NCBI RefSeq assembly: GCF_000142905.1
Contig: NW_013657675.1
Location: 310,001 to 374,000, forward strand
Reading direction: 5' to 3'
DNA from: Thecamonas trahens ATCC 50062
Taxonomy: Eukaryota > Protista > Apusomonadida
DNA length: 64,000 nucleotides
Part shown: piece after piece, positions 1 to 28,299 of the stretch
How positions within the stretch are numbered: position 1 is the first letter of the stretch
Layout: every line of letters begins with the position of its first letter
Translations under genes and position numbers: made by a program
Notes under the pieces: model-generated
What the model was told of the DNA's origin: nothing
What the model saw: the letters and a program-made list of their open reading frames with translations, nothing else
Databases searched by the model: none

Positions 1-3000
1 CGGGCCATCTCGGTCGCCGCATCGGGCGACATAGGCAGAGAGGGCAGGCCGGTGTCGAGTGGCGACGGCTCGTCGCCGCTGCGGAGGATCTGGACCACAG
101 AGTCGTCCAGCACCTCGTCCGGGGCGACAAACGAGAGGCCGTGCGTCGAGACCGACGACGTGATCTCCGAGACAATGTCAGCGGTGATAAAGACGGAGAG
201 CGTGGTCGGCGCAACCCGATACGGCTCACCGTAGTACAGGGTGGAGATCAACTTCTCGATGCGCACAATGCCGTCGCCGGTGAGCATACCGCCGGCTTTG
301 GCCACCTCACCGCGAGTAAAGACGACGGCGACCGGGCCGGCGGCCTCGACAACTACTGCAATCTGAGAGACGAAGGCGGTGATGCACTCTGGCGCTTGGG
401 CTGCGAGCGTCTGCGAGTCCAGGGCCCAGTCGATCTTGGCCATGCCGATTCGGCGAGCGAGCTTGTCCATACTGGTATGAAAGGCGGTAAAGGCCGTCTC
501 GGCCGACGACGGCGAGGCAAGCAGCATCTGGGTGGCATGGATGCAAACCACCTTGCACAGAACGAGATTGCCCGATGGCGCCTCGGCCGACGATGGGTAG
601 ACGACAGCCTGTGGCGAGTAGAGCTCAGCGAGCGAGACTGCCAGCGCATCAAAGGTTGGGCGATCCCCGGGCGACTGGCGCCAGAGCTGGGTGATGAGCG
701 GGACGAGCGGGGCGAGCCCAGGCAGGATCTTGTCCAGCGACGGCCGGCGGCCATCCATTACGTCGAGTGCCACCGCGAGCGGATTCTCACCTGGGAACAA
801 ATTCGAGCGCGTCGCCAGCTCGTACAGCGTGAGGCCGAGCGAGTAAGCGTCCGACGCGGACGACGTGCTCTCCGGGCCGGAGGAGAGGACTTCGGGCGCG
901 GTCCAGAATAGCGTGCCCACATTCTGCCGCGAACCATTGTGACCCGCTGCAGTGCCAAGCGACGAAAACGCCGACGAGGCAACCGAGGTAGCTGGATTGA
1001 TGGCGTTGCGGGACGAGGCCTTGGCCAGCTTTTCGTCCTTGGCCGTTTCGGTGGGGACGGAGGCCGCCGCCGCCTTGACCGACGACATGCCAAAGTCGGC
1101 AATCTTGGGCACCCAAGACGTGTCGAAGAGCACATTGAGCGACTTAAAGTCCGAGTGAATGACACCGGCGTGGGCGAGATATTGCATGCCCTGGGTCATG
1201 TTATGCGCCCACTTGAACATGATCGACGGGTCGAGGAAGAGGTCCGGCGCGTGGAGCACGTCGTAGAGCGTGCCACGGTCCATAAACTCGGTGACCAGCT
1301 GCGGCGGCTCGAGGGTGATGCCCATAAAAATGACAACGTTGGGATGCCGAAGCCGCATGAGCATGCTCGCCTCGTCCACAAACTCACGCAGCTGCCGCCC
1401 CGAGAGCTCGACGCACCGCGTCCGCTTGACTGCCACAGCGGTGGCCCGCCACGTTCCAGCGTACACGGTGCCAAACGAACCCTCGCCAACGGCAGAGCCG
1501 ATGACCAGCTCGTTGGCGTCGATTACCAGCTCCGAGTCGGAGCTGAGCTTGTAGGTCACCGACTTGCGCCGGTAAAAAAGCAGCCAGCGGCGACGCCGAC
1601 GAGGACGGCGACGGCAACAAGCGAGAGTACAACAGCAAGGATGAGTGCGGTGTTCGACGACTTGCTCGGCGCATCGAGTGCCATGATGTACGATGTCGTG
1701 GTCACATCCGAGTTGCCGAGGCCGGGCGCGATGGCAACCGCGCGCAGATCGATTGTGCCCGAGGTCGAGAGCATGATCGGCTCCGAGTACACGGGCGAGG
1801 CTCCGGTTGGGAGCGATCCATCCAGGGTGTAATGGATGGCGGCAGATGAGGTGAGCGTCTCGAGCGTGATGACAATCGGGTTGCGGAACGCGCCCGATGG
1901 CGGCGACGCGAGCGGCGCCGACGCTCGCTTCAGGACGGCGGCAACACGCAGCGCCTCGAGCTGCGGCAGCGCAGCGGTGATCGCGGCAGAGGCGACAGAG
2001 GCGTTCTGCGCCGTCACCACTTCGATCATGAGCTGCTGCCATTGGGTAATGATGTTGACAAAGCCAAAACCAGACATCGAGGTCCGGAGAACCGAGGCAC
2101 CGGCCGACGCGTACATGTTGTACCCGACACGGGTCCGGTTGGCCTCGATGGCGTCGGCAAGTGAGATGCGAAGCGGAAAGGCACCCGCAAGGCCGGCAAG
2201 GCCGGCACGCTGATAGCTTGAACTGCCCATGACCCGCAGCGCAGCCTTGGCCGACGCCACAAGCCGCGAGTTGATGGGCAAGCCGTAGACCACAATGCCG
2301 CCGATGGCAGCGTCGGTGGCCATGCCCGGCCCGGCACTCGCGCCCGGCCCATCGTAGTCAACAGGAAACGGAAAGGCGCCGAGATCGTCCTCGGGCAGTC
2401 CAAACAACACAGCGAGGGCGGCCACCGACTCAAAGCCGCAGAACATGGCAGCTTCGCCGGTTGCCAGCGCAGAGGCGTCGACAAGATTTGGCGGCTCCGC
2501 TCCTGGCTTGACGACAAACGCGCCGTCGCCAACAAGCGTCAGTAGGGCGTCAAAGGTGGCAGTGACGCGCGGATCGACAAACGTCATGTTTGACGAGGCA
2601 AATGAGGCGTAAGCCTCGTTGCCGTGCATGCGAATGAAGAGGTAGTCGAATATCGGCGACGGCGCCATGAAGCTGAGGTCGTTGCCGAGGCAGCCCTGGC
2701 CGGCAGCCTGGAGCTTGGCGCAGAGAGCCCGGAAGCCCGACCAGGTAGTTGGCAGATCGTCCGCAAAGATGCCATGGCTGGCAAAAAGGGCTTTGTTGTA
2801 CATGCAGAGGTTGGCCGAGCCGGCGATGGGCATGCCGTACTTGCGACCGTCGGCGCCGGTGCAAAAGGCCTCGGCAGCCGGAAGCGCATCGCCTGTCATG
2901 CCAACCTCGTCCCAAACATCGGTGAGGTCGACGTAGAGTCCGGCATCGATCGACTCGAGACGGCCGGGCCCATTGTAGAGATTCACCAGGTCGGGCGTGA

Positions 3001-3316
3001 GGAGCGAGGAGACCATGGTCTGATATACTTGTGGATCGGCCGGAAAGTTGATCCGGAACTCGGTGAGGAAGCTCTCGCCAGCACTTGCGTTTGCCACGCT
3101 GTTGTACTCGGAGATGAGGTAGCGTTGAAAACGGGTGAGGGCGGAGCCATCGGTGGTATCGAAAACAACACGCATGTCGGGCGCCTCAACTGACGCGACA
3201 GCCTTGCCGACCAACAAAGCAGTCACAACAAGGAGCACCAAAGTCCATGCCATAAGCTTCTGGTGTAGACTGCTTGTAGCCGTCATGCACGAGGCTACAG
3301 CCCGCTCTTTCGCCAT
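1..3316 (-). CDS. Receptor-like TKL protein kinase: signal peptide, sugar-type solute-binding ectodomain, CHB_HEX_C/Fn3-associated domain, TM helix, kinase, degenerate cyclase-like region. 3' end runs off the window; apparent 1-bp frameshift at 1574-1579
   Basis: ORF 1556..3628 has hydrophobic MAWTLVLLVVTALL, SBP motif YGMP...YNKALF...PTTW, IHYTLDGSLPT (CHB_HEX_C) and TM LILAVVLSLVAVAVLVGV. Adding one base to the A6 run at 1574-1579 continues into YRRKSV...GEGSFGTVY...VAVK...HSDFKSLN...DFG...GTLFWTAPE, open to position 1. Confidence 0.85.
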
Positions 3317-4516
3317 GGCCAATGTGGTTCGAGTTGAGTGATAACCACTCGGAAAGCCTTGGTGCGGTGGCACGACAACAGCGGGGAAATTGGCATTGCT
3401 TCCGGCCAGTGGCAACGCAACAGTGGCGAGTGGATGGAAGGAGTGCGAGGGGATCGGATGAGTGCAGAAGGAAGGCGAGTGCGTAAGGAGCTTGTATATG
3501 GCAAGGAAGAGGGGGGGGATAGGGAGGGGGGAGGAGGAGCCCAGAAAGTAGCAAGAAGCGTGGGGCAGAGGGTGCGCTGCCTGGTGGTGGGGAATATTGG
3601 GACATTGTGCGCATGCCGGCCACTCCATTGCAAACTCTTGTCACAGCTCCACCACCAACATGAGCGTGCGAGGCAAGTTTCGCCGCATCCACATCGTCAA
3701 ACAGCCTACAGCTGGGTACAACATCAGTGCGATGCCTCTTGAGGCAGGTCGAGCCATTTGGTGCGGTTGACATCTTCATCAAGGATCACTCCCTGGGCTA
3801 TCGTGTCGCATTCTGCCATCGTGACGGCTTCAACTCGAGAACTCGGCGGCACAGCATGGAAACTTGCGTAACGGGGCAATATCTGGCCGTCGCGTAGATG
3901 TGCTGTGCGCATGTGACCTACCGATAGCGAACAGCTTCCCTGATGTAGAACTACCCTGGCGAAGCCGCCTTCCGTGCACGTACCGTCGAGCCGGATGTCG
4001 TCGACGCTGCCCCTCCAATGCAAGCAACCATTACAGCCGTAGCCCAGACTGATGACGAGGCTACGACTCTACTGGCCGCCTAGGCGGTGGCGATCTAGTT
4101 GGGTCACCCATGATGGCGGCGAGGCTGTGGATGATGGCAATGACGATGACCATGGCTAGCTGAATGGTTGGTGACAGCTAAGCCACACACTCGTGGCGCA
4201 CACGAGACTTCCTCCGTCCGACGAACCCCGCCAGACTCAACTCTCACCTTTTTTCTCGAAGGGAACACCTCCGGCCGTTCTTTCCACGCGCCGCTTGCGT
4301 CCCCCTCCTTCACCTTTCCCACGCTCAACACCCACTCCATCTTCTTCGGAGTGTGCTTGTTGGCGTCCCCTGTGTTCTAACTCTTCCTCCCCCTCCCTCC
4401 TTTCGGTCCCGGTCTGTCTTCTGTGTCGCCTTGTGTGACCCCAGCCCGCCCGTACCCCCCCCCCCTCCCCCCCTTGGTCCGTCTTTCTGTTCCTGCATCC
4501 ATCGCCGACGTCAGCA

Positions 4517-15748: not shown

Positions 15749-17655
15749 TCATTCATTGGAGTGTAACACACTCCCACCGATCAACGGTGCCTCCATCCGC
15801 GATAGTGCCGCATACTTCCGCCCGCGGACTCGTTCCCACAAACGCAACAAGCCAAAGTCTGTGCCTGAGAGTACCGCGTGGAGGAGAAGAGCGTAGAGCA
15901 CAATCCAAACCGCGATGAGGCCGAGGAGGAGGCTGACACCGGCACCGACCGACGAGATAAAGTATGTGTCGCCCGACCTGAACACTGTCCGCAGCACGTC
16001 CTGCCCCGCCACCCGGCAAGCGGCGTAGTCCGGGATGACTTGCGCGAGCACCGTTGGGCACTCGAACGCCATGTCGGGGAACGTGATGAGCATCAGCGCC
16101 TGGATGGCAGGCCGATAGAACGACGAGAAGAACATCGGCCGGAGAACGGCAGGCGCCCGCGACGGGTTGATGATCGCGCCCGAGGTGAGCATAAAGAACC
16201 CGTAGAGTGTCACACCTACCGAGATCGCAATGACTGGGTCCGGCGAGACCAGGCCCATCACCAGCATGAACAGCTCGGCAAAGATGTTGGCCACCACCAG
16301 AACCGCCAGACCGGCAAAGAACCGGCCCACGCTCCCCCCGGCACCGCCATCATGGCATACAGCACCGCGTAGAACACGCCCACAATGATCAAAATGACAG
16401 CGCTCCGAAAAATAAGCGTGGTAGACACGTGTGCTGCTACAGAGTACAGCCGCGATCGGTACTCGTGCCGGAGAATGAGCCGGTCGTGGACCGCGTGTGG
16501 GAGAGTCGTCAGCGAGACAAAGGTGGTGACAAGGACGGCAAAGAAGAAGACATTGACCAGGTCCCGGACCGTCTCGTAGTCGGACGCAATTTCAAAGTAC
16601 AGCCCGCCAATCATGAGCGCCATCAACCAGATCATGACCGCGCGGACGGAAAACACGTGCGGATCGCGCTTGACCACCAGCGCCTGTCGCCAGAACAGCA
16701 CTTTCATCTTGCTCAGCGATCTCGCTCCAAACACGGGCTCGTCATCGCCGTACGACGTCGTCAGTCGCCGCTTCCCACTGCTGGTCACCAGCACCCGCCC
16801 CGTCGCCGCCCGCCGCCGCGTTCCGCTCCCTCCTCCCACCTCTTCCTCGCCCGACCCCGCCACCGCCACATCAAGCAAATCGCACCCGCCTGGTGAGACT
16901 ACCACCCGCAGCACTTCTTCCGCAACATTGGCGCCTGCAGGCGCAAGCCCGCCAGACACCAGCGCCTCTTGTAGCCGTGATCGTGGCCCCATGTACGCCA
17001 TCCGCCCGCCCACAAGCACCAGCAGCGAGTCCAGCAGACCCACAATCGCCCGCGACGGCTGGTGGATCGAGCACATGACCACAACGCCGTCGCGCGCCGC
17101 AAGCCCCGCCACATCCGCCATCAGTCGCTCTGCGCTCGCAGAGTCCAGCCCGGACGTCGGCTCGTCGAGCAGCAGGTACTTGGGCCGTGACAGCAGCTCG
17201 CACGCCACAGACACCCGCCGCCGCTCGCCGCCGGAAATGCCCCGCTCAAACGCAGACCCGATTCGCGAATCGGCGACATGCTCCAGCCCCAGATCCGCAA
17301 GCACCGCGTCCACAGCCTCGCTTAATACCGCCCCGACCGGCAACCGCAGCGCTCCCTGCGTCTCCAGCGTCTCGCGGACCGTAAGGCACGGAATCAGTGC
17401 TGCATCGTCCTGCGGGCAAAAAGCAAGACGAGACGCAACGTGCTTTGAGTAAGCCATCCCGCCGTACTGTACCCTCGCATCAAGCCGAGCCCCGCTCACC
17501 CCAGGCAGCCGCTCGCCTACCACCGTCAGGAACGTCGACTTGCCTGCCCCAGACGGCCCCATCACCCCCAGCACGGACCCAGGCGCCACCTCGCCAGCCA
17601 CAGACTGCAGAATACTCCGTCCATTCACCTCGTACGACGCAATTTCAAACTGCAT
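15749..17655 (-). CDS. ABCG (White-type) half transporter, NBD-TMD; 1-bp frameshift at C6 16334-16339
   Basis: Walker A GPSGAGKST, signature ISGGERRRV, Walker B LLLDEPTSGLD, SIHQP. ABC2 membrane domain is split between ORFs 16258..17655 and 15749..16330. Confidence 0.92.
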
Positions 17656-17776
17656 ACTCGACTCGTCGAGCGCGACGTGAGCTAGTCGTCAAGTGTCGTC
17701 ATAGCCCAGGCATATACCTCCTCTCTCCCCTCCCTTGCGCCCGCCTTTACACGCACAAGCGCACCACGTAGCATGT

Positions 17777-17851
17777 GGAAAATTATTAATCGTTCCGCAC
17801 CACTCTCCGCACCACTCCCCGCTTCACTCCCCGCACAACTCTCAGCAGCAC
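17777..17851. promoter_or_regulatory. AT-rich core plus five 12-bp degenerate repeats in the 275-bp divergent ABCG/PKS spacer
   Basis: GGAAAATTATTAATCG then TTCCGCACCACT CTCCGCACCACT CCCCGCTTCACT CCCCGCACAACT CTCAGCAGCAC; regulatory role inferred from position only. Confidence 0.5.
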
Positions 17852-17930
17852 GGTTCGGTGCCATGTGCAGGTCAGCGTCTTTTCCTCACCCCTACCGTCT
17901 CACACATCTCTCTCGCTACTGCTTGACATT

Positions 17931-20900
17931 ATGCCGCGCTTGGCTGTTGTCGGTGCTGCCTGTAACTATCCTGGCTCGCAGAGTCTGAAAGAATTGTGGG
18001 AAAATGTGTTGGCATCGCGTCGTCAGTTTCGTGACGTGCCTGACGAGCGCCTTCCTCTGGGCGATTACGGTGCTCCCGAGGGTGGCAATGGCGAAGGCGA
18101 GTTCAACGAGTACGATCCGGACTGGAAGGACAAGACTACCGCAAAGTATGCCGCCGTCCTCGATGGTGTCTCGGTCAATGCTCGCGAGTGGCGGGCGAAC
18201 AAGGCCAAGGTCGCATCGACCGACGTTGTCCACTGGCTCGCGCTGCAGGTTGCCGCTTCCGCCCTCGACTCGGTTGATCTCCCTGCAAAGCTCAACGAGG
18301 GCTTTGGCGTCATTGTCGGCAACACCCTGACCGGCGAGACCTCGCGGGCGTCACTCATGCGCCTTAGATGGCCCTTTGTGGAGCGCGAGCTCCGCGAGAC
18401 CGCGGCCGGCCAAGGTCTCGCCCCCGAAGCCATCGACGCACTCGTTTCCGGGCTTAAGACCCGCTACAAGGCTGCGTTTGCCGAGACCACCGAGGATACC
18501 CTTGCCGGCGCTCTTTCCAACACCATTGCCGGCCATGTCTCCAAGCACTACGGCCTGCAAGGCTGCGCATACACAGTCGATGGCGCGTGCGCCTCGTCTG
18601 CGCTCGCTGTCGCCGTCGCTGCAGACCAGCTTGCTGCCGGAAATCTCGACGTTGCCCTCGTCGGCGGCGTCGACATCTCGCTGGATCCGCTCGAGCTCGT
18701 CGGCTTCTCACGCGCAGGCGCGCTATCGTCCACAGACATGAACGTCTATGGCGCTGCCGCAGACGGCTTCTTCCCTGGCGAGGGCTGCGGCTTTGTGGTC
18801 ATCATGCGCGCAGACGATGCTACTGATCTGGGACTCCCCATCCTTTCCTTCCTCGACGGATGGGGCATCTCAGCCGACGGCTACGAGGGCATCATGCGTC
18901 CGTTCCTTGATGGCCAGGCTCTCGCCATCTCGCGCGCTTACGCTCGAGCAAGCTTTGATCCGCGTGACACCCACTTTGTCGAGGGCCACGGGACCGGTAC
19001 CCCAACCGGCGACCCCATCGAGCTCGGCGCCATCCACAAGGTCTTAGCTGCGGCCACGGCCGATGCCGGCGAGCCGGCTGTCGAGCCAGCCTGCATTGGC
19101 GTGACCTCAATCAAATCCATCATTGGTCACACCAAGGCTGCGTCGGGCATTGCTGCATTCCTCAAGGCCGTCCTCGGCGTCAACCAGCGGGTCATCCCAC
19201 CTATGGCCGGCATCCAGCTCGACTCGGTTGCGCCAGCTCTCGCCAAGCTCCCCGGCGTGTATCCAGTCATCCACGGCCGCGCGCTTGCTCTTGACACCGA
19301 CATGCATGCCGCGTCATCGTCGATGGGCTTTGGCGGCATCAACGTCCACCTCATCGTCTCATCCACCGCTGCCTCGCCGCCGCTTCAGCTACTCGGCGGT
19401 CCCGATCACCTCGCCCGTGAGCGCTATCTTGCCTCGGCCCAGGATGCTGAACTCCTTGTCTTTAACGCGCCCTCGCTCACTGGCCTCCTTGCCGAACTCA
19501 CCGAAGCCGCTGACATCCTCTCGCGCGCCTCCTGGGCCGAGGTCGCCGACTACGCCGCCCATCTTGCCGCGGCGGCGGCCGCATCTGATGCCGACCTCTG
19601 TGCAGCCACTGTCGCTGCCGTTGTCACCTCGCTCGCCCATGCCCAGAGCCTCGTTGCAGACGCCATCGCTGCTGCCTCAGACGCCTTGGCTCTCGCTCCG
19701 GTCGTGCTGCCCGAGAGCCTCTATGCCTCGTTTGCGCCGTCGTGGAAGGCTGCCGACCCCGAGCTCGTCTGGGTCTGCGCTGGCCAGGGCACGCAGCGGG
19801 CGGGCATGGCCCTCCAGCTCTGCCGCCGCTTCTCTGCTACTCATCGCGCAGAGCTGCTCGGCATTGATCCCAACTCAGAGCTGGCTGCTGAGGTCGAGGC
19901 AGTTGTCACTGCCGCGCTCGACGTTCATCTCCCTGTACTTGCCGCCCCGCATCCTCAGCTCTTGGCCACGCTCAAAGACGACGCCCAGCGCGTTCTCGCT
20001 GTGACTGAAGCCCTGTGGATTGGCCTACTTCGCCGCTGCGGCGTGCCGTGCGGCGCCGTCGCCGGCCACTCACTAGGTGACGTCATCGCGCTATACGCTG
20101 CCGGCGTCTTTGATTTTGCCACTTTGTGGCAAGTGGTCGACGCGCGCGCGCGCGCGTTTGCTAGCGCGCCGAGTGGTGGAATGGCGGTCATGCGCGGATC
20201 AGCTGACGCTGCTGCCGCACTTCTGGCAAGCGTTCCCACCGGCAACCAGCTGGTCGTCGCCAACATCAACGCGCCCGACCGCATCGTCCTTGCGGGGCCA
20301 CCAGACGCCATCGCCACCGCTGTGGCCGCCGGGGCCGACGCAGGGCTCCCGGGCGCGGTCCTTGCCTCGGTCTCTGCCCCGTTCCACACCCCAAGCATGG
20401 CCGACGTCGCCGCATCATTTGAGGCTGCGCTGCTCGCCATCCTCGAGGAGACCACGCTTGCCAAACCCAGCGTGCCGGTCTACTCCTCGTGCCGCGGTGG
20501 CGAGCTTGAGCTCTCCGCCATGGCGTCCCCGGCCGCCCTCGCCACATACCTTGCTCAGTGCGTGGCGTCACCGGTCGACTACGTCGGTGTTGTCGCCGCC
20601 GCCACCGCTGCTGGCCACAAGCTCGGTATCGAGATCGGGTCGTACACCCACGACATGACCCGAATGACCCGTCGCTGTGGCGACGCCCTGAAGCTGCTCC
20701 CGGTTGAGGCTCGCCCGGGTTGCTTTGGTGCTTTCCTTGACCTGGTCGCCCGCTCCGTGGCGGCGGCGCCGGCGACGCTTGCCCTCCATCCGCTCTTTGA
20801 CCACCGCTTTGTGCGCGAGTGGGTCGACCCGCGGTCAAGGACGTTCATCGTCAACCCATGTGAGTCGCCGATCTACGGCCCGCCACTGCAAGACGCCACC

Positions 20901-23900
20901 AAGCTCCGCTCGCGAGTTGCTACCGTCTCAGCCTCTATCCGCGACAGAGGCGCAAGTGCTGCCAACGACCGCGGCTCGGATGTCCGTGCTGCCGCGCGTC
21001 GCGCCGCAGCCCGCCGTAAGGACCACAAAGCCGCACGATCCAAGACAAACTCCGGCAAGCCGAGGTCCAAGGCTGCGGTGGCGTTTGAGACCGCCGTCGT
21101 GCCTTCGCTCGCCACGGCGGGTGATGCCGCAACCAACGAGGCGCTTGCAAAGTACCTTGCGGTCCGTGGCAAGTACCTTGCCTCGCTCATCGAAGCTGAC
21201 ATGCGCAAGGGCGGCGTCCAGGCCGCCATCGAGGCCGCCGACGCCGCCGCCGAGGCCAAGCGTCAGCAACGCATCCGCGCCATGTCTGTGGCAGCCACCG
21301 CTGCCGTCCTCACTGCCGAGCCGAGCATGACTGCTGCCCTCGTCCTGGAGGTTGTTGTGGATCTGGCCTCCGAGGCTGCGTCCTTTGCCGCCGCGCCCAC
21401 CACCCAGCTGCTCGAGCTCTACCTCGATTCAATCAAGTCGGTCCGGTTCATCACCGACATTGCGGTTGCCCTCGGCCTCGACGCCTCGCTTGTCAACCCG
21501 ACGTCGCCCGATTGGCAGAAACCGATGACGCTTGCCTCGCTCGCCAAGCGCATGCATATCCTCTGTGAGTCAAGCGGTGGCGCTGGCCAGCGCGCTGGCC
21601 CGGCGTCAGGCGGCCTTGCATCGGGCGCAAGCCAATCGGTTTGGTCTTGGCTCGGCATCTTTGACGAAATGCCGCTCCCGCTCTTTCCCAACCCCGATCC
21701 AATCGCCTCGATCGAGTCCGCCACGCTTGTTGTTCATGTTGGCGACGACTCGGCTGCCGCCGCCCACAACGTGGCCAGTGGCTTGGGTCTTGCCGAGCCC
21801 ACTATCGTTATTGACCTCGCCGCCGATGCAGCCGCTGCGGCTGCGGCTGCTGCGGCTGCGTCCTATCTCATTGTCGTAGCCCCACAGATACCGGACCCCG
21901 CAACTTCTGCTGGTGCTGCGGTGACGGCAACTGCGACGGTGATGGCGACGCTCGGTCGCCTCGTCCGTGCTGTTGGCGATGTGTGGAGGATGGAGGACCG
22001 CTGCGGTGGCCGGATCAATGATGGCGGCATTATCTATGTGCTGCATGGTGACGGGCCTGTCCCACTCCGCGGCTTTGCCGCCTCGGCTCTCCTTGAGGCG
22101 GGCTCGTACGTCCCAGCAGCCGTTGTGACCTGCGAGCCGAGCCTGTCGCCAGCTGATGCCGGGCGGTTCACTGCCGCTCTACTAACTCGCTGCCCGCTCG
22201 AGCCCAAGTTTGTCATCGCCACCACGTCCGGCCCAGCTCCGGCCGACGGCAAGTCCTGGATCGCCTTCCGTCATCCGCGACCATACTCCTTCGACTCTTC
22301 GCCACTCCTCCTCGATGCCCCGGCTCTGGCGTCGTCGGCTGTGGCTGTTGCGCCAGTATCGGAGGCAGCTGCCGTTGTCTCGTGGTGTGACGCGCTCGCC
22401 CGCGGCGGCGATGCTCCGCGGTCGACTTTGGGTGCCGTCGTTGTCTCGGGTGGTGGTAAGGGCATCACGGCCGAGTGCATCTTCCGTGCTGCGGCCTACC
22501 TCTCGCTCACCAGGCTCGTTCTTGTTGGCACCTCGCCGGCCTCGCATCCTCAGGTCACCGCTACGCTCGAGCGGATGGCGCGAGTGCCTGGCCTGCAGGC
22601 GCGGTACTACGTCGCAGATGTGACGGACCGCCCATCAGTCGACGCCATGCTTGAGGCGCTGAGTGCCGACGAGCCGTCATGGGAGGTGGTCGGCCTTGTC
22701 CACGGTGCCGCGACCAACAAGCCAGCTGCCACCGACGAGCTGGGATCGGGGGACGCCGCCGCGCGCGACATGCAGGTCAAGGTCTGCGGCGCCGCGGTCC
22801 TCCTCGACGCGCTGCACACCTCACCGCGCGCTCGCGGCGAGCCCGGGCTGGAATTTATAGTCGGCCTCTCGTCGATCATTGCCGCCACTGGCATGTTTTC
22901 GGCAGGCGTCTACGGCAGCGCCAATCTGCTGATGGAGCGCGTCTTTGGCTCGGTCGCCAGCTCGGTTCCAGTCGTCCTCATCCGCTACGGCGTATGGGAA
23001 GAGGTTGGCATGGGCGCCCGCATGGGCTCGGTCGAGTTTATGGAGGCATCAGGCATGACGCCGCTGAGCGTCGAAGCCGGCTCGCGCGCCTTTGTCGAGC
23101 TACTCGCCGAAGCGCTTGTTGCTGACAATCTAGCTGCACCGATCGTTGCTGTTGTTGCCTCGCGCCTTGGCGGACTGGCCACCTGGTGCAACGGATGGAA
23201 CTGCTCCCATCCGCGGGTCCGCAACGCCGCGGGTGCTTCGATTCTCAGCAACGCACCGGCCTTTGACTCGGTCGCCGCGCTGGAGCCCAACCTCGAGCTG
23301 ACGCTTGTCCGCAAAATGAGCATCCAAAATGCCCGCTACCTAGCCGACCACTCGATCGGCGGCTCTGTGGTGGTGCCAGCTGCGGTCGAGCTGGCGCTCT
23401 GTGTTCAGGCCGCCGCGGGGCTTCACGCCCCACTCCATCCGCCGGCCAGCACCAAGCCGAGCTGGAAAGATGTGAGCGCGGGCTCAATTGTCTGCCGCGA
23501 CTTTGCCTTTCCTCTCGCGCTCGACGTCCATCGACGCCGCGGTGCCGTCGTGGCTGTCACCGCCGCCAACTGGACAGCAGCGCCCAGGCTGGATGGCCAG
23601 GCACATCCGTGGTCCGTCGTATGGGTGCAAAACGAGTTTGGCAAGCTAACCGCCACCGGATGCGTTGGTATCGTGACCACTGACACCCTTGCTGACGGCG
23701 CCTTTGCGCGGTGCGCCGCGCCGCTCAAGCTCCTTGCTGACGCCCGCAGCTCAAGCCCGACGTACATCGATGTCAAGGCCGACATCTATGAGCCCGGCCT
23801 TCTCTTCCACACTAGCGTCTTTCGGCGCATTAGCGCTATCCGTGCCCTCATGTGGGACGAGGCGGCTGGGCGCGGCCACGTCATTGCCCGGGTCTCGCGC

Positions 23901-26105
23901 ACGCCCGGCGGCGTTGACGACGTCATGGCCACCCGCGAGTCACTCGGCGGTCTAGGGGATCCGCTCTTCCGTGACGGTGTCATCCAGTGCGCGCTGGCGA
24001 TCATCCCGCAAGAGGTCTCGCTGCCGTCATCGCTTTCAGCACTGTATGTCCACCAAGCCGCGAGCTTCGCGCTGGCTGATGCTGACGTCCTCGATGTGGT
24101 ACTCACGCTCACCCGCGAATACAACGGCGTCTACGCCGCCAACGTCGTTGTCCACGGCATTCATTCGGTCAGTGGCGCCTCGATGGTGGCCGAAGAGTGG
24201 TACGGCCTGAGATACAAGGTTGTTCGCCACGATCCGACGCGCCCGGCGGCAGCCGACCTTCTCGCGCCCAGCGCTCGTGACAACACCGTGCTGAACAAGA
24301 CTATGAGCGAAGCAGCCTTTGCCTTTGGTATAGAGCTTCCCAAGCTCGCGGTCTGCGCCGCTGAGCTCCCGTTTCAGGCCGTCGGCAGGCCTGCCGGAGT
24401 GCAGGCTATGATCAAGACGGCGCGGCGCAAGGCCCAGGCTGAGATGGTGACAGATCTCGTTGGCAGTCATGCCAAGCTCGGCCACAGCCCTACCGGCGCG
24501 CCACACCTGGTATTGCGGTCGCCAGGAAGCTCGAAAGCCGAGACTGGGCTCTCGTTTTCGTACACTGAGCGAGTGCTGGCGGCGGCGTGTGACGATGGCA
24601 GCGCTGGATTTGGCTCCGCCGTCGGCATCGACGTGGTGGCGCTCCGCGACGACGCGTCGCGCGTCACCGCCGCCATGCTCCCACACAAGAGCCATCGCAA
24701 GGTGGTGGTCTGGCTCACCTCGGGCGGATATGGCAAGGTGAGTGTAGATAGCGCCCACGTGGCGCGGGCGCGAATCTGGGCAGCGCTCGAGGCGGCGTTC
24801 AAAGCCCGTGGGCCGCTTGCTGATGCAAGCCGCGGATGGAGTGATGCAAGCGTTGGTGTCCTCCGCCGCCGCGGCGATGCAGTCCTGCTCTGGGTTGAGG
24901 GCCCGAACGGCGCCGGACGCGAAGGCAAGCACCTTGTTCTCACTCTCCCGCTACAGCTGACCCGATCGGGTAAGATTATGACTGCTGTGACCGCGCGCGA
25001 AGCCGGCCTGGACACGCTCGGGCTGGTAGTGCCCGGGCCGCAGCTGGGGTGGAACCTCGGCATTGCGCTCTCGCCCGAGCCCAGCAACTCGTCAGACATC
25101 GCGTTCACCATACGGCACCGCATGGCGGTCTCATTCCACGACACCGGCTCCGCAAGCGCCACGTTCCTCTTTGCGCGATTGTACGACGTCATCGGGCGGA
25201 CGCGCGAGCTGTCGATGCGGTACTCGCCCGAGGCTCTCTCCGAGGCTACCAGGTTTTCCGAGGGCGAGGTGGCGTCGGTGAGTGACTGGGTCCATGTCGT
25301 GCGCGTTCGCGAGATCGAGGTCAAGGACGTACTCCAGGTCGAGTTCCGAGCGGTGAGCGTGACCGAGGCGTCCGCCGTTTTCTCAATCCGCATGCTTGCC
25401 GGGCGCAGCGGGACCGAGTTTGTACCGGTTGCCTACGCCACGCTCGGTATCTCAGCAGTGCGTGTTGAAGGCCGCGAGGCTGCGCGGACGCCATGGACCG
25501 CGGCGTTTATGCGGTTCTTGTGCGCCATGGCGCCAAGAGTCTCGTACGCAGAAGCATCGCAGGCGGTGTTCCGATCGGTGCTTGATGGCTCAGTCCTCGC
25601 GTCGCCGTCGTGGCACGGCGGCGTGGCGTGCCAGGCCGACTGGGGCGTCGACGATGCCGAGTGGGCCGAGGCCAGGGCGGCGCCGGCGACCGATCTTGGC
25701 GGGCAGATTTGGGCCTCGTCCGAACGCGGTGGTGCAGTTGTCCACGTCTGGCAGCACACAACGGATCGGATGGCCAGTAACTTTGTGGGCAACGTGTACT
25801 TTGCCGAGTACGGAGCGTGGATGGGCGCGGCGTGGGAGTCGCTCATCCACGACGTCGATGCCGCCGCCGAGGCCGCCGGCAGCCTCCGCGTCCACGAATC
25901 CAACATTGTGTACGAGGTCGAGTCGTTCCCGTTCGACTCGCTGTCGTGCGAGGTTGGCATCGCCGCTGTTCATGACACCGGCGTGGTCGTCGACTTTGTC
26001 TTTCGCCGCCCGGGCGTGGTTCTTGCCCGCGGCCGGCAGGTGTACTGCGGCGAGATGGGGCCAGGCCTGCACAACGTGCTCGATCGGGTGATGGCTTCAG
26101 TTTAG
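17931..26105 (+). CDS. pksE: Enediyne-type iterative type I polyketide synthase (KS-AT-ACP-KR-DH-PPTase) with two fused hot-dog thioesterase domains
   Basis: KS: DGACASS (Cys 18588), EGHGTGT, GHTKAASG. AT: AGQGTQ, GHSLG (20070), APFH. ACP: LYLDSIK (21429). KR: SGGGKGITAEC, YGSAN. DH: YLADHSIGGSVVVP, GDPLFRD. PPTase: VGIDVV, RIWAALEAAFKA. TE: IGRTRE and SNFVGNVYFAEY. PKSE-diagnostic KS strings STDVVHWLAL and VGNTLTGETSRASLMRLRWPFV. Confidence 0.92.
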   Translation: MPRLAVVGAACNYPGSQSLKELWENVLASRRQFRDVPDERLPLGDYGAPEGGNGEGEFNEYDPDWKDKTTAKYAAVLDGVSVNAREWRANKAKVASTDVVHWLALQVAASALDSVDLPAKLNEGFGVIVGNTLTGETSRASLMRLRWPFVERELRETAAGQGLAPEAIDALVSGLKTRYKAAFAETTEDTLAGALSNTIAGHVSKHYGLQGCAYTVDGACASSALAVAVAADQLAAGNLDVALVGGVDISLDPLELVGFSRAGALSSTDMNVYGAAADGFFPGEGCGFVVIMRADDATDLGLPILSFLDGWGISADGYEGIMRPFLDGQALAISRAYARASFDPRDTHFVEGHGTGTPTGDPIELGAIHKVLAAATADAGEPAVEPACIGVTSIKSIIGHTKAASGIAAFLKAVLGVNQRVIPPMAGIQLDSVAPALAKLPGVYPVIHGRALALDTDMHAASSSMGFGGINVHLIVSSTAASPPLQLLGGPDHLARERYLASAQDAELLVFNAPSLTGLLAELTEAADILSRASWAEVADYAAHLAAAAAASDADLCAATVAAVVTSLAHAQSLVADAIAAASDALALAPVVLPESLYASFAPSWKAADPELVWVCAGQGTQRAGMALQLCRRFSATHRAELLGIDPNSELAAEVEAVVTAALDVHLPVLAAPHPQLLATLKDDAQRVLAVTEALWIGLLRRCGVPCGAVAGHSLGDVIALYAAGVFDFATLWQVVDARARAFASAPSGGMAVMRGSADAAAALLASVPTGNQLVVANINAPDRIVLAGPPDAIATAVAAGADAGLPGAVLASVSAPFHTPSMADVAASFEAALLAILEETTLAKPSVPVYSSCRGGELELSAMASPAALATYLAQCVASPVDYVGVVAAATAAGHKLGIEIGSYTHDMTRMTRRCGDALKLLPVEARPGCFGAFLDLVARSVAAAPATLALHPLFDHRFVREWVDPRSRTFIVNPCESPIYGPPLQDATKLRSRVATVSASIRDRGASAANDRGSDVRAAARRAAARRKDHKAARSKTNSGKPRSKAAVAFETAVVPSLATAGDAATNEALAKYLAVRGKYLASLIEADMRKGGVQAAIEAADAAAEAKRQQRIRAMSVAATAAVLTAEPSMTAALVLEVVVDLASEAASFAAAPTTQLLELYLDSIKSVRFITDIAVALGLDASLVNPTSPDWQKPMTLASLAKRMHILCESSGGAGQRAGPASGGLASGASQSVWSWLGIFDEMPLPLFPNPDPIASIESATLVVHVGDDSAAAAHNVASGLGLAEPTIVIDLAADAAAAAAAAAAASYLIVVAPQIPDPATSAGAAVTATATVMATLGRLVRAVGDVWRMEDRCGGRINDGGIIYVLHGDGPVPLRGFAASALLEAGSYVPAAVVTCEPSLSPADAGRFTAALLTRCPLEPKFVIATTSGPAPADGKSWIAFRHPRPYSFDSSPLLLDAPALASSAVAVAPVSEAAAVVSWCDALARGGDAPRSTLGAVVVSGGGKGITAECIFRAAAYLSLTRLVLVGTSPASHPQVTATLERMARVPGLQARYYVADVTDRPSVDAMLEALSADEPSWEVVGLVHGAATNKPAATDELGSGDAAARDMQVKVCGAAVLLDALHTSPRARGEPGLEFIVGLSSIIAATGMFSAGVYGSANLLMERVFGSVASSVPVVLIRYGVWEEVGMGARMGSVEFMEASGMTPLSVEAGSRAFVELLAEALVADNLAAPIVAVVASRLGGLATWCNGWNCSHPRVRNAAGASILSNAPAFDSVAALEPNLELTLVRKMSIQNARYLADHSIGGSVVVPAAVELALCVQAAAGLHAPLHPPASTKPSWKDVSAGSIVCRDFAFPLALDVHRRRGAVVAVTAANWTAAPRLDGQAHPWSVVWVQNEFGKLTATGCVGIVTTDTLADGAFARCAAPLKLLADARSSSPTYIDVKADIYEPGLLFHTSVFRRISAIRALMWDEAAGRGHVIARVSRTPGGVDDVMATRESLGGLGDPLFRDGVIQCALAIIPQEVSLPSSLSALYVHQAASFALADADVLDVVLTLTREYNGVYAANVVVHGIHSVSGASMVAEEWYGLRYKVVRHDPTRPAAADLLAPSARDNTVLNKTMSEAAFAFGIELPKLAVCAAELPFQAVGRPAGVQAMIKTARRKAQAEMVTDLVGSHAKLGHSPTGAPHLVLRSPGSSKAETGLSFSYTERVLAAACDDGSAGFGSAVGIDVVALRDDASRVTAAMLPHKSHRKVVVWLTSGGYGKVSVDSAHVARARIWAALEAAFKARGPLADASRGWSDASVGVLRRRGDAVLLWVEGPNGAGREGKHLVLTLPLQLTRSGKIMTAVTAREAGLDTLGLVVPGPQLGWNLGIALSPEPSNSSDIAFTIRHRMAVSFHDTGSASATFLFARLYDVIGRTRELSMRYSPEALSEATRFSEGEVASVSDWVHVVRVREIEVKDVLQVEFRAVSVTEASAVFSIRMLAGRSGTEFVPVAYATLGISAVRVEGREAARTPWTAAFMRFLCAMAPRVSYAEASQAVFRSVLDGSVLASPSWHGGVACQADWGVDDAEWAEARAAPATDLGGQIWASSERGGAVVHVWQHTTDRMASNFVGNVYFAEYGAWMGAAWESLIHDVDAAAEAAGSLRVHESNIVYEVESFPFDSLSCEVGIAAVHDTGVVVDFVFRRPGVVLARGRQVYCGEMGPGLHNVLDRVMASV

Positions 26106-26119
26106 CGGCATAGAGCAGA

Positions 26120-28165
26120 TCAAAGGCGCACGCCGCCGGAAATGATGTCGGCGTGGAGCTTGGGTGTGAGTGGGACAAAGGTGTTGCCTGAGAGGAAGTA
26201 AATGTCGGGGACATATTCGGGGTCAATGCCTTCGTCGCGGAGCTGGACCTTCTTGTGCTTGTACGTGCCGGTGAGATCCATGGCCGGGAGAAAGCGGAGG
26301 AAGAGCGGAACGGCATATGAGGCGAGGTGCGTGCGGATGTGAGCGGCAAAGCCGGTAAAGTCAAAGGCATCAGGCGAGGCGCCGACAATGGCCACCAGGC
26401 CAGCTCGGCCGGAGTACTCGCCGACGGTCACGCCGTAGACGTTGCACTCGAGCGGGGCCGGATCGGTGAAGCGGGCGCATACCTCAGCAACCTCCGAAGT
26501 GGCCACGTTCTCGCCCTTCCAGCGGAACGTGTCGCCGATGCGGTCAACAAAGTAGACAAAACCTTCGTCGTCGCGCTTGAGCAGGTCGCCTGAGCGGAAC
26601 CAGGCATCGCCTTGCTTGAACACATCCTTGAGCACCTTTTTCGACGATGCCGTCGATGAAGTGTAGCCCGAGTAGTTGGTCGCGCCCGACTTGAACTTGA
26701 TGATCTTGGCGATAAACTCGCCAGCCTCGTCGGTCTCGACCGCGATGCACCTGCCGTCGGGTCCGCGAACCACCTCTTCGGTCATGCGGTCAAATTTGAC
26801 GATTTGCTGCGGGAGAATGGCCTGCAGCGGTTGCGAGATGTATCCGATTGAGTTGTCCTTGTCCTCCAGGTTGAGAATGGCGGCCGCGCCCTCAGTGGCG
26901 GCGTAGAACTCGAGGATGCGGTCTACGCCGAACCGGGTCTTGAACTTGGACCACACGTCTGGCCGGAGACCGTTGCCGATGGCCAGGCGGACCGAGTTGT
27001 CGGCGTCACGAGGGTGCGCCGGCGCCGCGAGTAGGTAGCGGCAGAGTTCGCCGATGTACTGCACAATGGTGACGTCGTACTTGACCACGTCGGCTGTGTA
27101 CCGTGAAGCCGAGAACTTGGACCGGAGAACCATCATGGCACCGCCATACAACACCATACCCACGCCAATCATACCGGCGGCAGAGTGGTAGAGCGGGAGG
27201 ACGGTGTAGACTCGGTCGTCGGGCGTGACCTTGGCAAAGATCGAGAACGCCGACGCCGCAGTCAGGTAGCGGAAGTGGGTCACGATGGCGGCCTTGGGCA
27301 GGCCGGTCGTGCCCGAGGTGTAGATATAGAGCAGTGGGTCACGCGTCTTGACTCCACGAGCGTACCCACGGCTCTCAGCTGGCACCGGCTTGATCGAGAG
27401 GCTTGACCAGCCGATGGCAGACGCGCCGTCGACCCGCGCGAGCTCGTCGGCCGCATCGTCGTCAAGGCAGGCGAGCAGAACGTCCGAGTGCAGGCCACGG
27501 AGCTCGTCGCGGACAGCGGCGACAACGTTGGCAAGTGCAGCATCAAACAGTACGGCCTGCGCGCCCGAGACCGCGATCGAGTGCATCAGCACATCGCCAG
27601 TCTGGTTGGTGTTGACCAGCGCGGCACGGACGCCGACCTTGGCCAGGCCTAGCCAGACGGCAATGTACCGCGGGCGGTTGTAGCCAAACACCGCGACAAT
27701 GGTGCCAGGCTCGAGGCCGGCGTCTAGCGCCCAGTGCGCCACCTGGTTGGCGGCGTCGTCCATCTGGCCAAAGGTAAAGTACTCGCCAGAGTCAACATGG
27801 GCAAAGGCCGGGGCGCCACGGCCGCGCCAAGCCACGGTCGACTCCCAGAGCTGATCCACAGTTGTGTTCTTCCGGTCCGCGTTCTTGAGATACAGCTGGA
27901 TGCGGACTCCACCGACGAGCATCCGTACATCGCGCATTCTCAGACCCTTTTTGGAGACAAGGAAAGCAAGGCCAGCAGCAGCGACGCCAGCCAGGACCAG
28001 CAGGACCAGCCACAGAGCACACACCAGCCACCAGAGCACAGGCCCCAGCACAAGGCCAACAACAAGTCCCGAAACTCCCGGCGAGTGGCGGACCAAGCTC
28101 CTCATGCCCTCCTTCACTCGTCCCACCATGCTCGTTGCGCTCGCTCGGCTCGTTGTTCCTGACAT
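26120..28165 (-). CDS. Fatty acid transport protein / very-long-chain acyl-CoA synthetase (SLC27/FATP family)
   Basis: N-terminal TM; YIYTSGTTGLPKAA; QYIGELCRYL; GNGLRPDVW; EFYAATEG; FVDRIGDTFRWKGENV. Confidence 0.95.
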   Translation of the reverse strand: MSGTTSRASATSMVGRVKEGMRSLVRHSPGVSGLVVGLVLGPVLWWLVCALWLVLLVLAGVAAAGLAFLVSKKGLRMRDVRMLVGGVRIQLYLKNADRKNTTVDQLWESTVAWRGRGAPAFAHVDSGEYFTFGQMDDAANQVAHWALDAGLEPGTIVAVFGYNRPRYIAVWLGLAKVGVRAALVNTNQTGDVLMHSIAVSGAQAVLFDAALANVVAAVRDELRGLHSDVLLACLDDDAADELARVDGASAIGWSSLSIKPVPAESRGYARGVKTRDPLLYIYTSGTTGLPKAAIVTHFRYLTAASAFSIFAKVTPDDRVYTVLPLYHSAAGMIGVGMVLYGGAMMVLRSKFSASRYTADVVKYDVTIVQYIGELCRYLLAAPAHPRDADNSVRLAIGNGLRPDVWSKFKTRFGVDRILEFYAATEGAAAILNLEDKDNSIGYISQPLQAILPQQIVKFDRMTEEVVRGPDGRCIAVETDEAGEFIAKIIKFKSGATNYSGYTSSTASSKKVLKDVFKQGDAWFRSGDLLKRDDEGFVYFVDRIGDTFRWKGENVATSEVAEVCARFTDPAPLECNVYGVTVGEYSGRAGLVAIVGASPDAFDFTGFAAHIRTHLASYAVPLFLRFLPAMDLTGTYKHKKVQLRDEGIDPEYVPDIYFLSGNTFVPLTPKLHADIISGGVRL

Positions 28166-28299
28166 GCGTTTTTTTAGGGGAGACGTGTGGGCAGACTTTG
28201 GGCTGCAGGTCCAGCTACCAAAGCGCACGACCAATGCAGCTCGGTGTCGGCTTTGCCCAGAGTCACTTCCGATGGCTGTTGTGACGGCGGGAGGTCTTA

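Follow-up and report, generated by a model that had tools for sequence, protein, structure and literature searches.

How does a protist chromosome come to carry an enediyne-type polyketide synthase, and what would the enzyme make there? Enediyne polyketide synthases (PKSEs) are treated as a bacterial speciality, and in NaPDoS2 the enediyne subclass is one of the iterative classes recorded from bacteria (PMC9582728). The gene considered here lies in a 64,000-nucleotide stretch of Thecamonas trahens ATCC 50062 (positions 310,001 to 374,000 of contig NW_013657675.1, assembly GCF_000142905.1; hereafter the window), where an earlier note had described an intact synthase of this kind. With a probability of roughly 0.6, we read this gene, called PKS below, as a functional nuclear gene for a self-contained iterative type I polyene synthase of the PKSE family, of the long-form kind, of bacterial descent and linked to a gene for an ABCG half-transporter. 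By analogy with studied PKSEs, we infer that its product would be a conjugated polyene hydrocarbon or acid. New here are two metagenomic relatives on eukaryote-type contigs, which form a strongly supported clade with the Thecamonas protein and are each encoded beside an ABCG half-transporter gene. Literature searches turned up no paper that connects Thecamonas to polyketide synthases and none linking an enediyne PKS to any eukaryote. If the broader and more tentative reading given below, of a conserved synthase-exporter unit in protists, is true, the gene would represent the first enediyne-type PKS chemistry in eukaryotes and give the first handle on an unstudied family of bacterial long forms.

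Architecture of the synthase and its fused thioesterase

An unbroken open frame spans positions 17865-26105 of the forward strand, with its first ATG at 17931, its TAG stop at 26103-26105 and 2724 amino acids between them. The open reading frame (ORF) list and the translation thus bear out the single intronless 2724-aa ORF of the earlier note. In three independent runs the frame is broken upstream of this ATG by an additional T after 17879, which supports 17931 as the start. Independent runs also differ from the assembly by an extra A after 17778; both insertions fall in the promoter region shared by the ABCG gene and PKS, and both are probably homopolymer errors of the reference. The gene and its parts are as follows (aa, residues of the protein; A1, an alignment of 26 long PKSE-like proteins; A3, the C-terminal 575 residues of PKS aligned with 19 long forms, 20 sequences in all).

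17931..26105, + strand: whole PKS gene, 2724 codons plus TAG, without intron; ketosynthase (KS), acyltransferase (AT), acyl carrier protein (ACP), ketoreductase (KR), dehydratase (DH), phosphopantetheinyl transferase (PPTase) and double hot-dog thioesterase (TE), in this order
17931..19370, + strand: KS, aa 1-480; Pfam PF00109/PF02801; Cys220, His353 and His400 invariant in A1
19761..20705, + strand: AT, aa ~611-925; Pfam PF00698; GHSLG at 712 (Ser714) and Arg739 in invariant A1 columns
20853..20864, + strand: post-AT NPCE motif, aa 975-978, from a motif search
21318..21575, + strand: single acyl carrier domain, aa ~1130-1215, borders approximate; phosphopantetheine site Ser1167 in LDSIK
22428..23210, + strand: catalytic part of the KR, aa ~1500-1760; GGGKG at 1507, Lys1617, Ser1648, Tyr1661 and Asn1665 invariant in A1
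23283..24305, + strand: DH, aa ~1785-2125; Pfam PKS_DH_N at 1790-1831; His1807 and Asp2015 (DxxxQ) invariant in A1
24378..24995, + strand: integrated PPTase, aa ~2150-2355; weak Pfam ACPS match at 2231-2313; GID at 2232, WAALEAAFK at 2283
25104..25487, + strand: TE hot-dog domain 1, aa ~2392-2519; G-x-x-R-E with Gly2422, Arg2425 and Glu2426
25704..26084, + strand: TE hot-dog domain 2, aa ~2592-2718; Asn2617, Asn2621, Tyr2623 and Tyr2627 (SNFVGNVYFAEY) invariant in A3

Domains were assigned from Pfam and NCBIfam searches, and residues are called invariant with respect to A1, in which all catalytic residues of PKS are conserved without exception. Pfam recognizes the KS, the AT, PKS_DH_N, ACPS and a C-terminal 4HBT_2 domain. 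Pfam, A1 and motif searches together give the order KS-AT-ACP-KR-DH-PPTase, with one ACP and without an enoylreductase (ER), which is the published domain order of PKSEs (PMC9992847). The domain scan therefore agrees with the order given in the earlier note, which had nonetheless omitted the fused C-terminal double hot-dog TE. Every catalytic motif quoted there was located in the protein and is intact: in the KS these include DGACASS at 217 (Cys220), EGHGTGT at 351 (His353) and GHTKAA at 399 (His400), and further on NPCE at 975, LDSI at 1165 (Ser1167), YGSAN at 1661 and LADH at 1804 (His1807).

The KS also carries four strings that had been likened to those of actinomycete PKSEs, namely STDVVHWLAL at aa 96, VGNTLTGETSRASLMRLRWP at aa 129, EDTLAGALSNTIAG at aa 188 and GGVDISLDPLELVGF at aa 245. 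In loosened form these occur in 45-71 of 80 PKSE-like KS domains, compared with 0/3 PfaA-family and 0/4 modular KS domains, so that in this comparison the likeness is specific to the family. The NPCE motif likened to actinomycete PKSEs along with them is also present. All four of its residues (N975, P976, C977, E978) are invariant in the Thecamonas protein and its two eukaryote-type relatives, P0148 and P0156, and N975 and P976 are nearly invariant in the bacterial long forms, whose consensus also reads NPCE. A search of the Protein Data Bank (PDB) with the AT region has malonyl-CoA:ACP transacylases as its top matches; an enediyne AT is not among the 28 matches at E<=1e-10, which is uninformative on family membership. 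In the carrier domain L1163, S1167 and I1168 are invariant in A1 and the protein has only one such site; at the homologous place of P0156 Pfam weakly detects a PP-binding domain. Pfam KR matches fall at the aligned place in both P0148 and P0156. The PPTase region aligns with the PPTase block of bacterial long forms.

The C-terminal TE occupies aa ~2392-2718. Searched against the PDB, the last 325 residues have significant matches solely to CalE7, DynE7, an "ACP-polyene thioesterase" (4i4j) and two unnamed thioesterase entries, the enediyne thioesterases matching at E = 3e-5 to 1e-3 and ~27% identity, and a discrete Streptomyces TE matches the window by tblastn at 25749-26090. Gly2422, Arg2425 and Glu2426 of domain 1 (columns G273, R276 and E277 of A3) are invariant in all 20 sequences. 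An AlphaFold (AF2) model built from A3, with a mean predicted confidence (pLDDT) of 70.7, has a folded alpha/beta PPTase-like region followed by two helix-on-sheet units, the first with a helix and a sheet of 4-5 strands. Foldseek matches this model to the double hot-dog acyl-ACP thioesterases FatA/FatB, ACOT12 and LnmK at a TM score of about 0.7 on the target, and in the model aa ~2392-2718 superpose on plant and bacterial FatA/FatB enzymes and on ACOT12/ACOT7 at TM 0.64-0.75 on the target with 9-15% sequence identity. FatA/FatB and ACOT12/ACOT7 are built in this way, as two hot-dog domains in tandem of which a single site works. In the PDB search alignment, from which the CalE7 numbering was read, the Asn and Tyr corresponding to Asn19 and Tyr29 of CalE7 are retained in domain 2, and the position of Arg37 is occupied by Trp; these three we take to be the conserved residues of CalE7. 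The domain 2 Arg is kept in the bacterial long-form consensus and lost in the eukaryotic proteins, and domain 1 has its invariant Arg-Glu at the place equivalent to Arg37. The TE thus appears to have one composite active site, to which domain 1 would contribute Arg-Glu and domain 2 Asn/Tyr.

Family placement and a eukaryotic clade

A single-protein search of genome contigs returned zero related loci, and an alignment query was required to find them. The closest full-length matches are proteins of 2200-2650 aa with ~39% identity over KS-AT, many of them labelled "enediyne polyketide synthase" by the Joint Genome Institute (JGI) and several with a hot-dog domain; PKS is collinear with the bacterial long forms over aa 4-980 and 1503-2693. 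Compared with PKSE-like genes from 80 named bacterial genomes, the KS has 42-50% identity to PKSE-like domains, about 30% to those of three PfaA-model genes and 27-29% to those of modular PKSs. In quick IQ-TREE and FastTree trees, the PKSE-like group including the query is split from PfaA and modular KS domains with approximate likelihood-ratio (SH-aLRT) support of 99-100. A first KS tree, rooted on FabF-type fragments, proved an artefact (branch length 6.5, with the query drawn to the root) and was discarded. KS similarity, family-specific motifs, domain order, the PPTase and a TE of the CalE7/DynE7/SgcE10 type all agree with the PKSE-type synthase of the earlier note, and on these sequence grounds we assign PKS to the PKSE superfamily in the broad sense, in its long-form, TE-fused branch.

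The position within that superfamily is less sharply defined. In the KS-AT tree the canonical short forms, two groups of long forms and the eukaryotic clade branch as a polytomy, and the query branch is long (1.5-1.8 changes per site). An approximately unbiased (AU) test on KS-AT leaves a placement of the eukaryotic clade beside the PfaA outgroup unrejected (delta lnL 2.7, P = 0.40), so that the KS phylogeny, a check which the earlier note had proposed, groups the query with PKSE-like proteins while permitting it to be the earliest branch. In a full-length tree over the shared domains (37 rows, 2019 columns), the canonical clade stands apart from all others with a support of 100, and the query is on the non-canonical side. 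The eukaryotic clade pairs there with a long-form clade of 20 members at 89, and another clade of long forms falls outside the pair.

The two proteins with the best full-length BLAST totals to PKS, P0148 and P0156, came from a search of 1.84 billion representative proteins, and both lie on eukaryote-type contigs. P0148 (2877 aa) is encoded on a JGI contig of 80 kb with a GC content of about 48% (L104), among genes for a myosin with a pleckstrin homology (PH) domain, an actin-fragmin-kinase-domain protein, a trypsin-PDZ protease and a divergently oriented ABCG half-transporter. P0156 (2712 aa) is encoded on a 16-kb contig among HSF-domain exons, PARG, a sugar transporter and a convergent ABCG gene. 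Behind its TE, P0156 has a C-terminal PH domain (aa 2621-2711, Pfam E = 7e-11), so that a megasynthase of bacterial type here bears a membrane-targeting extension in eukaryotic style. All three proteins group as one clade, with a support of 99 in FastTree, 99 in IQ-TREE on KS-AT and 100 in IQ-TREE on full-length data. In a search with a profile built from them, they reach 4083-4349 bits, the next protein being a bacterial long form at 1501 bits, and hundreds of columns, spread over all domains, are invariant among them.

The transporter gene is the neighbor that all three loci share. In the window it stands immediately upstream of PKS, on the other strand:

15878..17655, - strand: White-type ABCG half-transporter, divergent neighbor of PKS; Pfam ABC_tran and ABC2_membrane, TIGR00955
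17656..17930, no strand: divergent ABCG-PKS intergenic region, 275 bp, bridged by environmental and same-organism contigs

The ABCG protein of L104 has its best match in the whole Thecamonas genome (a 28.7-Mb assembly of 131 contigs) in the PKS-adjacent ABCG gene, in three pieces of 42-43% identity summing to 341 bits, against 254 bits and 35% for the next ABCG paralogue; the neighboring ABCG proteins are each other's best matches. A search with the same protein elsewhere found two close homologues, both on contigs of only 2-3 kb, too short to reveal their neighbors. The myosin motor of L104 has only 42% identity to its best match in the Thecamonas genome, and the actin-fragmin-kinase gene has no match there, so the L104 organism is not a close relative of T. 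trahens. There is thus a eukaryotic clade of three synthases with conserved ABCG linkage. Two eukaryote-type relatives in the clade and an ABCG neighbor in all three loci argue for an acquisition by eukaryotes that was old or shared, and the ABCG protein is probably a functional partner of the synthase. A metagenome scan with the three-protein alignment reached only the bacterial score range among the matches listed, with L104 not among these, and so gives no measure of how rare the clade is.

An alternative that takes the tree uncertainty at face value is that PKS is a lipid synthase of the polyunsaturated fatty acid (PUFA) synthase kind, whose product would be fatty-acid-like rather than a conjugated polyene and would be activated by the acyl-CoA synthetase encoded next door:

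26120..28234, - strand: FATP-type long-chain acyl-CoA synthetase, convergent with PKS; Pfam AMP-binding, NF006134 at 643 bits (cut-off 625)

PfaA and the heterocyst-glycolipid-type synthases (TIGR02813) share a related KS-AT-ACP-KR-DH backbone and are the sister family of PKSEs in KS trees (PMC4247773); a cyanobacterial survey likewise finds enediyne-type KS clades adjacent to PUFA-type ones (PMC4247773). The PfaA model matches aa 4-901 of PKS, the AU test permits a position beside PfaA, and the fused TE might merely hydrolyse the chain to a free acid. However, the model match reaches only 272 bits, far under its cut-off of 1010, and the KS is closer to PKSE-like domains by more than ten points of identity (42-50%, against ~30% to PfaA). 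The protein has one ACP rather than a tandem array and is without ER, chain-length factor or FabA-type DH pair, nor are there partner subunits bearing an ER or FabA-type DH; conversely its own PPTase and its TE of the CalE7 type are both lacking in PfaA. No TIGR02813 member scores above cut-off in the whole genome, whose two other KS-like places are both FabF/FAS-like. Finally, no AMP-binding gene stands beside P0148 or P0156, so the FATP neighbor of PKS is not conserved at the related loci. We consider a PUFA-type role unlikely.

Selection, descent and residence in the eukaryotic genome

Near-identical DNA occurs in sequencing runs of six studies, including estuary and marine metagenomes, the marine pieces at >=99% identity. 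Across three environmental runs the PKS ORF has 21 variant sites, 15 synonymous and 6 non-synonymous, and this ratio of natural variants shows that the protein is kept by purifying selection. Two metagenomes also carry, as a minority form, an in-frame GCT insertion after 21845, inside a GCT repeat. These variants bear on the idea that PKS is the decaying relic of an old transfer and makes no product. The long branch, the Ala-rich insertions (18% Ala) and the weak or absent Pfam scores for the KR, ACP, PPTase and TE would suit such decay, and no RNA run is among those listed with the stretch in a look-up across runs of any kind. Yet the 8.2-kb frame is free of stops, the catalytic residues are all kept, synonymous variants outnumber non-synonymous ones by 15 to 6, and hundreds of columns are invariant across the three eukaryotic proteins, all of which makes a relic very improbable.

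As to where the gene came from, the named relatives outside the eukaryotic clade are all bacterial and span 14 phyla. No relative was found in any named eukaryote in searches that included 1.84 billion representative proteins, and nothing in that set exceeds 43% identity to PKS. Because bacteria alone supply the named relatives outside this small clade, transfer from a bacterium to a eukaryote followed by long divergence would be the economical reading. The earlier note's proposal of horizontal acquisition by the flagellate is retained in this respect; it is modified in that PKS is not a lone insertion, two eukaryote-type relatives sharing its clade. The family could instead be ancestrally eukaryotic, or have moved from eukaryotes to bacteria: the clade is deep and the KS-AT data permit a basal position. 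Against this, three eukaryotic members face thousands of bacterial ones in 14 phyla, the clade falls between two bacterial long-form clades in the full-length tree, and no named eukaryote has a relative, so that we regard a eukaryotic origin as highly doubtful.

PKS sits ~328 kb along a contig of 654,703 bp, flanked on both sides by eukaryotic genes; its neighbors in the window include, besides the White-type ABCG and the FATP-type acyl-CoA synthetase, genes for MAP10, NCA2, EF1B, a protein kinase and a papain-type protease. The GC content at its third codon positions (GC3) is 0.735, inside the range of 0.70-0.86 of 15 other ORFs in the window, in line with the host-like, GC-rich codons that had been remarked on. 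An estuary-metagenome contig of 3489 bp, from an independent source, covers 17001-20353 unbroken, from the 5′ end of the ABCG gene through the 275-bp intergenic region and into PKS for 2.4 kb. A contig of the same organism, from a run of 2020, crosses 17212-18414 with zero mismatches, so that on the ABCG side the junction is spanned in two sources. Because the flanks are eukaryotic, GC3 matches, the estuary contig spans the junction and natural variants stand at 15:6, PKS is a resident gene of the eukaryote, as the earlier note had held. Bacterial contamination or a chimeric assembly join, for which one could cite the all-bacterial named close relatives and the missing intron, is left with almost no probability by the eukaryotic genes on both sides in a 655-kb contig, the spanned junction, the host-like GC3, the ceiling of 43% identity among 1.84 billion proteins and the PKS-ABCG pairing on two other eukaryote-type contigs.

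Bacterial long forms and the proposed chemistry

Bacterial PKSE-like ORFs fall into two length groups, of about 1900-2030 aa and 2100-2900 aa. The shorter group includes the canonical enzymes SgcE, CalE8 and DynE8, which PKS resembles in domain order, single ACP, lack of an ER, KS strings and TE family, at 33-38% identity over KS-AT and about 45% within the KS. Their TE (SgcE10, CalE7, DynE7) is a free protein of ~150 aa, whereas that of PKS is fused and duplicated to a double hot-dog. In a Streptomyces locus (L084), the PKSE is immediately preceded by genes of 659 aa and ~339 aa and immediately followed by a hot-dog TE of 158 aa. The two preceding genes occupy the same position in 25-26 loci, which are short-form except for one unclassifiable partial locus (L081) and have hosts among actinomycetes, Acidobacteriota, Planctomycetota, Chlorobiota and others. 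The two genes are consistent with the minimal PKSE cassette, which consists of the PKSE, the TE and three conserved genes (PMC9992847). By sequence search the two genes occur in 0 long-form loci and are absent from the window, and queries with the single Streptomyces proteins turned up neither of them anywhere in the protist genome.

The bacterial long forms, by comparison, stand alone among housekeeping genes and match the discrete TE solely in their own C-terminus. They occur in Derxia lacustris (P0017), Methylococcus capsulatus (L046) and Desulfosarcina variabilis (L092), for example, and also in Nostocales and Myxococcota. Collinear with PKS over the full length, with both hot-dog domains and their invariant residues and without the cassette, they are its nearest group in the full-length tree (26-31% identity over the full-length alignment); the eukaryotic members differ from them in forming their own clade, in the ABCG neighbor and, in one case, in the PH domain. 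A profile search returned >5000 proteins at E<=1e-50, a count that takes in canonical PKSEs and other type I PKSs.

The enediyne-PKS architecture described in the earlier note therefore holds in the sense of a PKSE-type synthase, but PKS falls outside the canonical clade (the split at 100), its TE is fused, and neither of the two tested cassette genes was found; it is also longer (2724 aa) than the canonical enzymes, whose hosts are bacteria. That it begins a true enediyne pathway in the protist, as its KS motifs, domain order and CalE7-like TE might suggest, is scarcely credible, because genes accompanying every sampled canonical locus were not found beside PKS or, with the single Streptomyces queries, in the genome, the query lies on the non-canonical side and the bacterial long forms stand alone among housekeeping genes; with PKS outside the canonical clade and the tested cassette genes not found, nothing points to an enediyne.

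For the polyene synthase that we favor, a mechanism can be drawn by homology with SgcE/SgcE10 and CalE8/CalE7. The built-in PPTase would place phosphopantetheine on Ser1167 of the lone ACP, and the AT would load malonyl units. As KS, KR and DH would act in each round and there is no ER, a fully conjugated polyene thioester would grow on the ACP, in keeping with the iterative, fully dehydrated polyene chemistry of canonical PKSEs (PMC9992847), which would be expected of PKS too. A PKSE with its TE yields 1,3,5,7,9,11,13-pentadecaheptaene from a C16 thioester (PMC9992847); here the C-terminal double hot-dog TE would free the chain, possibly with decarboxylation, to give a polyene hydrocarbon such as a C15 heptaene. 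The ABCG half-transporter would then move the hydrophobic product into or across a membrane, and the conserved ABCG gene together with the PH domain of P0156 suggests a membrane-directed or exported, lipid-like product. By this account a long-form PKSE-like ancestor would have passed from a bacterium to a eukaryote long ago and left three very divergent descendants that kept the ABCG gene. More broadly, and more tentatively, since we would put it at somewhat under even odds, heterotrophic protists may own a conserved unit of a self-activating and self-releasing PKSE-type polyene synthase and an ABCG exporter, derived from one old bacterial gift. The conjugated polyene that this unit would make and export might serve as a membrane antioxidant, as a pigment or against bacterial prey or competitors.

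Several points weigh against this reading. Searchable literature has no described product for any long-form PKSE-like enzyme, and the chain length and release chemistry proposed here would be extrapolated from canonical PKSE/TE pairs at 33-38% identity over KS-AT and ~27% over the TE. With Trp at the position of Arg37, the composite-site idea is needed for the TE to stay active. Nesting inside bacterial diversity is moderately supported, through the full-length tree (89) and the shared architecture, with the long query branch and the unrejected position beside PfaA on the other side. The adjacency of ABCG and PKS is correlation only, and no RNA run accompanies the stretch. The contigs of P0148 and P0156 could conceivably be of giant-virus origin, although a scan of IMG/VR found no relatives.

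On our reading, PKS together with its two eukaryote-type relatives makes a clear and testable case of the old transfer of a whole megasynthase from a bacterium to a eukaryote. It may offer a one-gene route to conjugated polyenes that needs no helper PPTase or TE, handy for expression and for hydrocarbon or polyene engineering, and an entry point to a widespread bacterial long-form family whose product is apparently undescribed. Few conserved pairs of biosynthetic genes are known from protists, and PKS with ABCG would be one more.

The bacterial loci also include variants of the architecture. The partial locus L081, on a 7.4-kb contig of a Myxococcota metagenome-assembled genome (MAG), has both cassette genes upstream and a KS that groups with long forms in a quick KS tree, and its ORF runs off the contig. 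Many bacterial long forms of ~3000-3200 aa carry a fused FAD amine-oxidase/phytoene-desaturase-like domain, some with PilZ in addition (P0277, P0282, P0298, P0299, P0302, P0305, P0306, P0319, P0321, P0336, P0347 and P0356), and in one locus such an oxidase is a gene next to the long form (L014:17492-18997), a hint that bacteria may desaturate or oxidize the polyene further. A split cyanobacterial form, with a KS-AT protein of ~1010-1030 aa followed by a remainder ending in the hot-dog TE, is found in five Nostocales and one Hyellaceae MAG (L016, L018, L021, L034, L042 and L091).

Around PKS itself, the ABCG gene aligns with its L104 counterpart in three pieces with a frame shift between about 16333 and 16357, which is a short intron or an assembly indel. 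Contigs from a same-organism run and from a marine metagenome have identical loose ends at 17054 and 17169 (region 17054-17175); these most likely reflect a paralogous ABC ATPase gene that matches the conserved motif stretch only. On the other side, just 14 bp separate the stop codon of PKS from that of the convergent acyl-CoA synthetase gene (26103-26122), so the 3′ ends of the two genes must overlap. A further bacterial-looking module lies at 1556-3628 on the reverse strand of the window, where an ORF joins an extracellular solute-binding domain of bacterial type (SBP_bac_1/8) to Fn3_assoc and chitobiase C-terminal domains.

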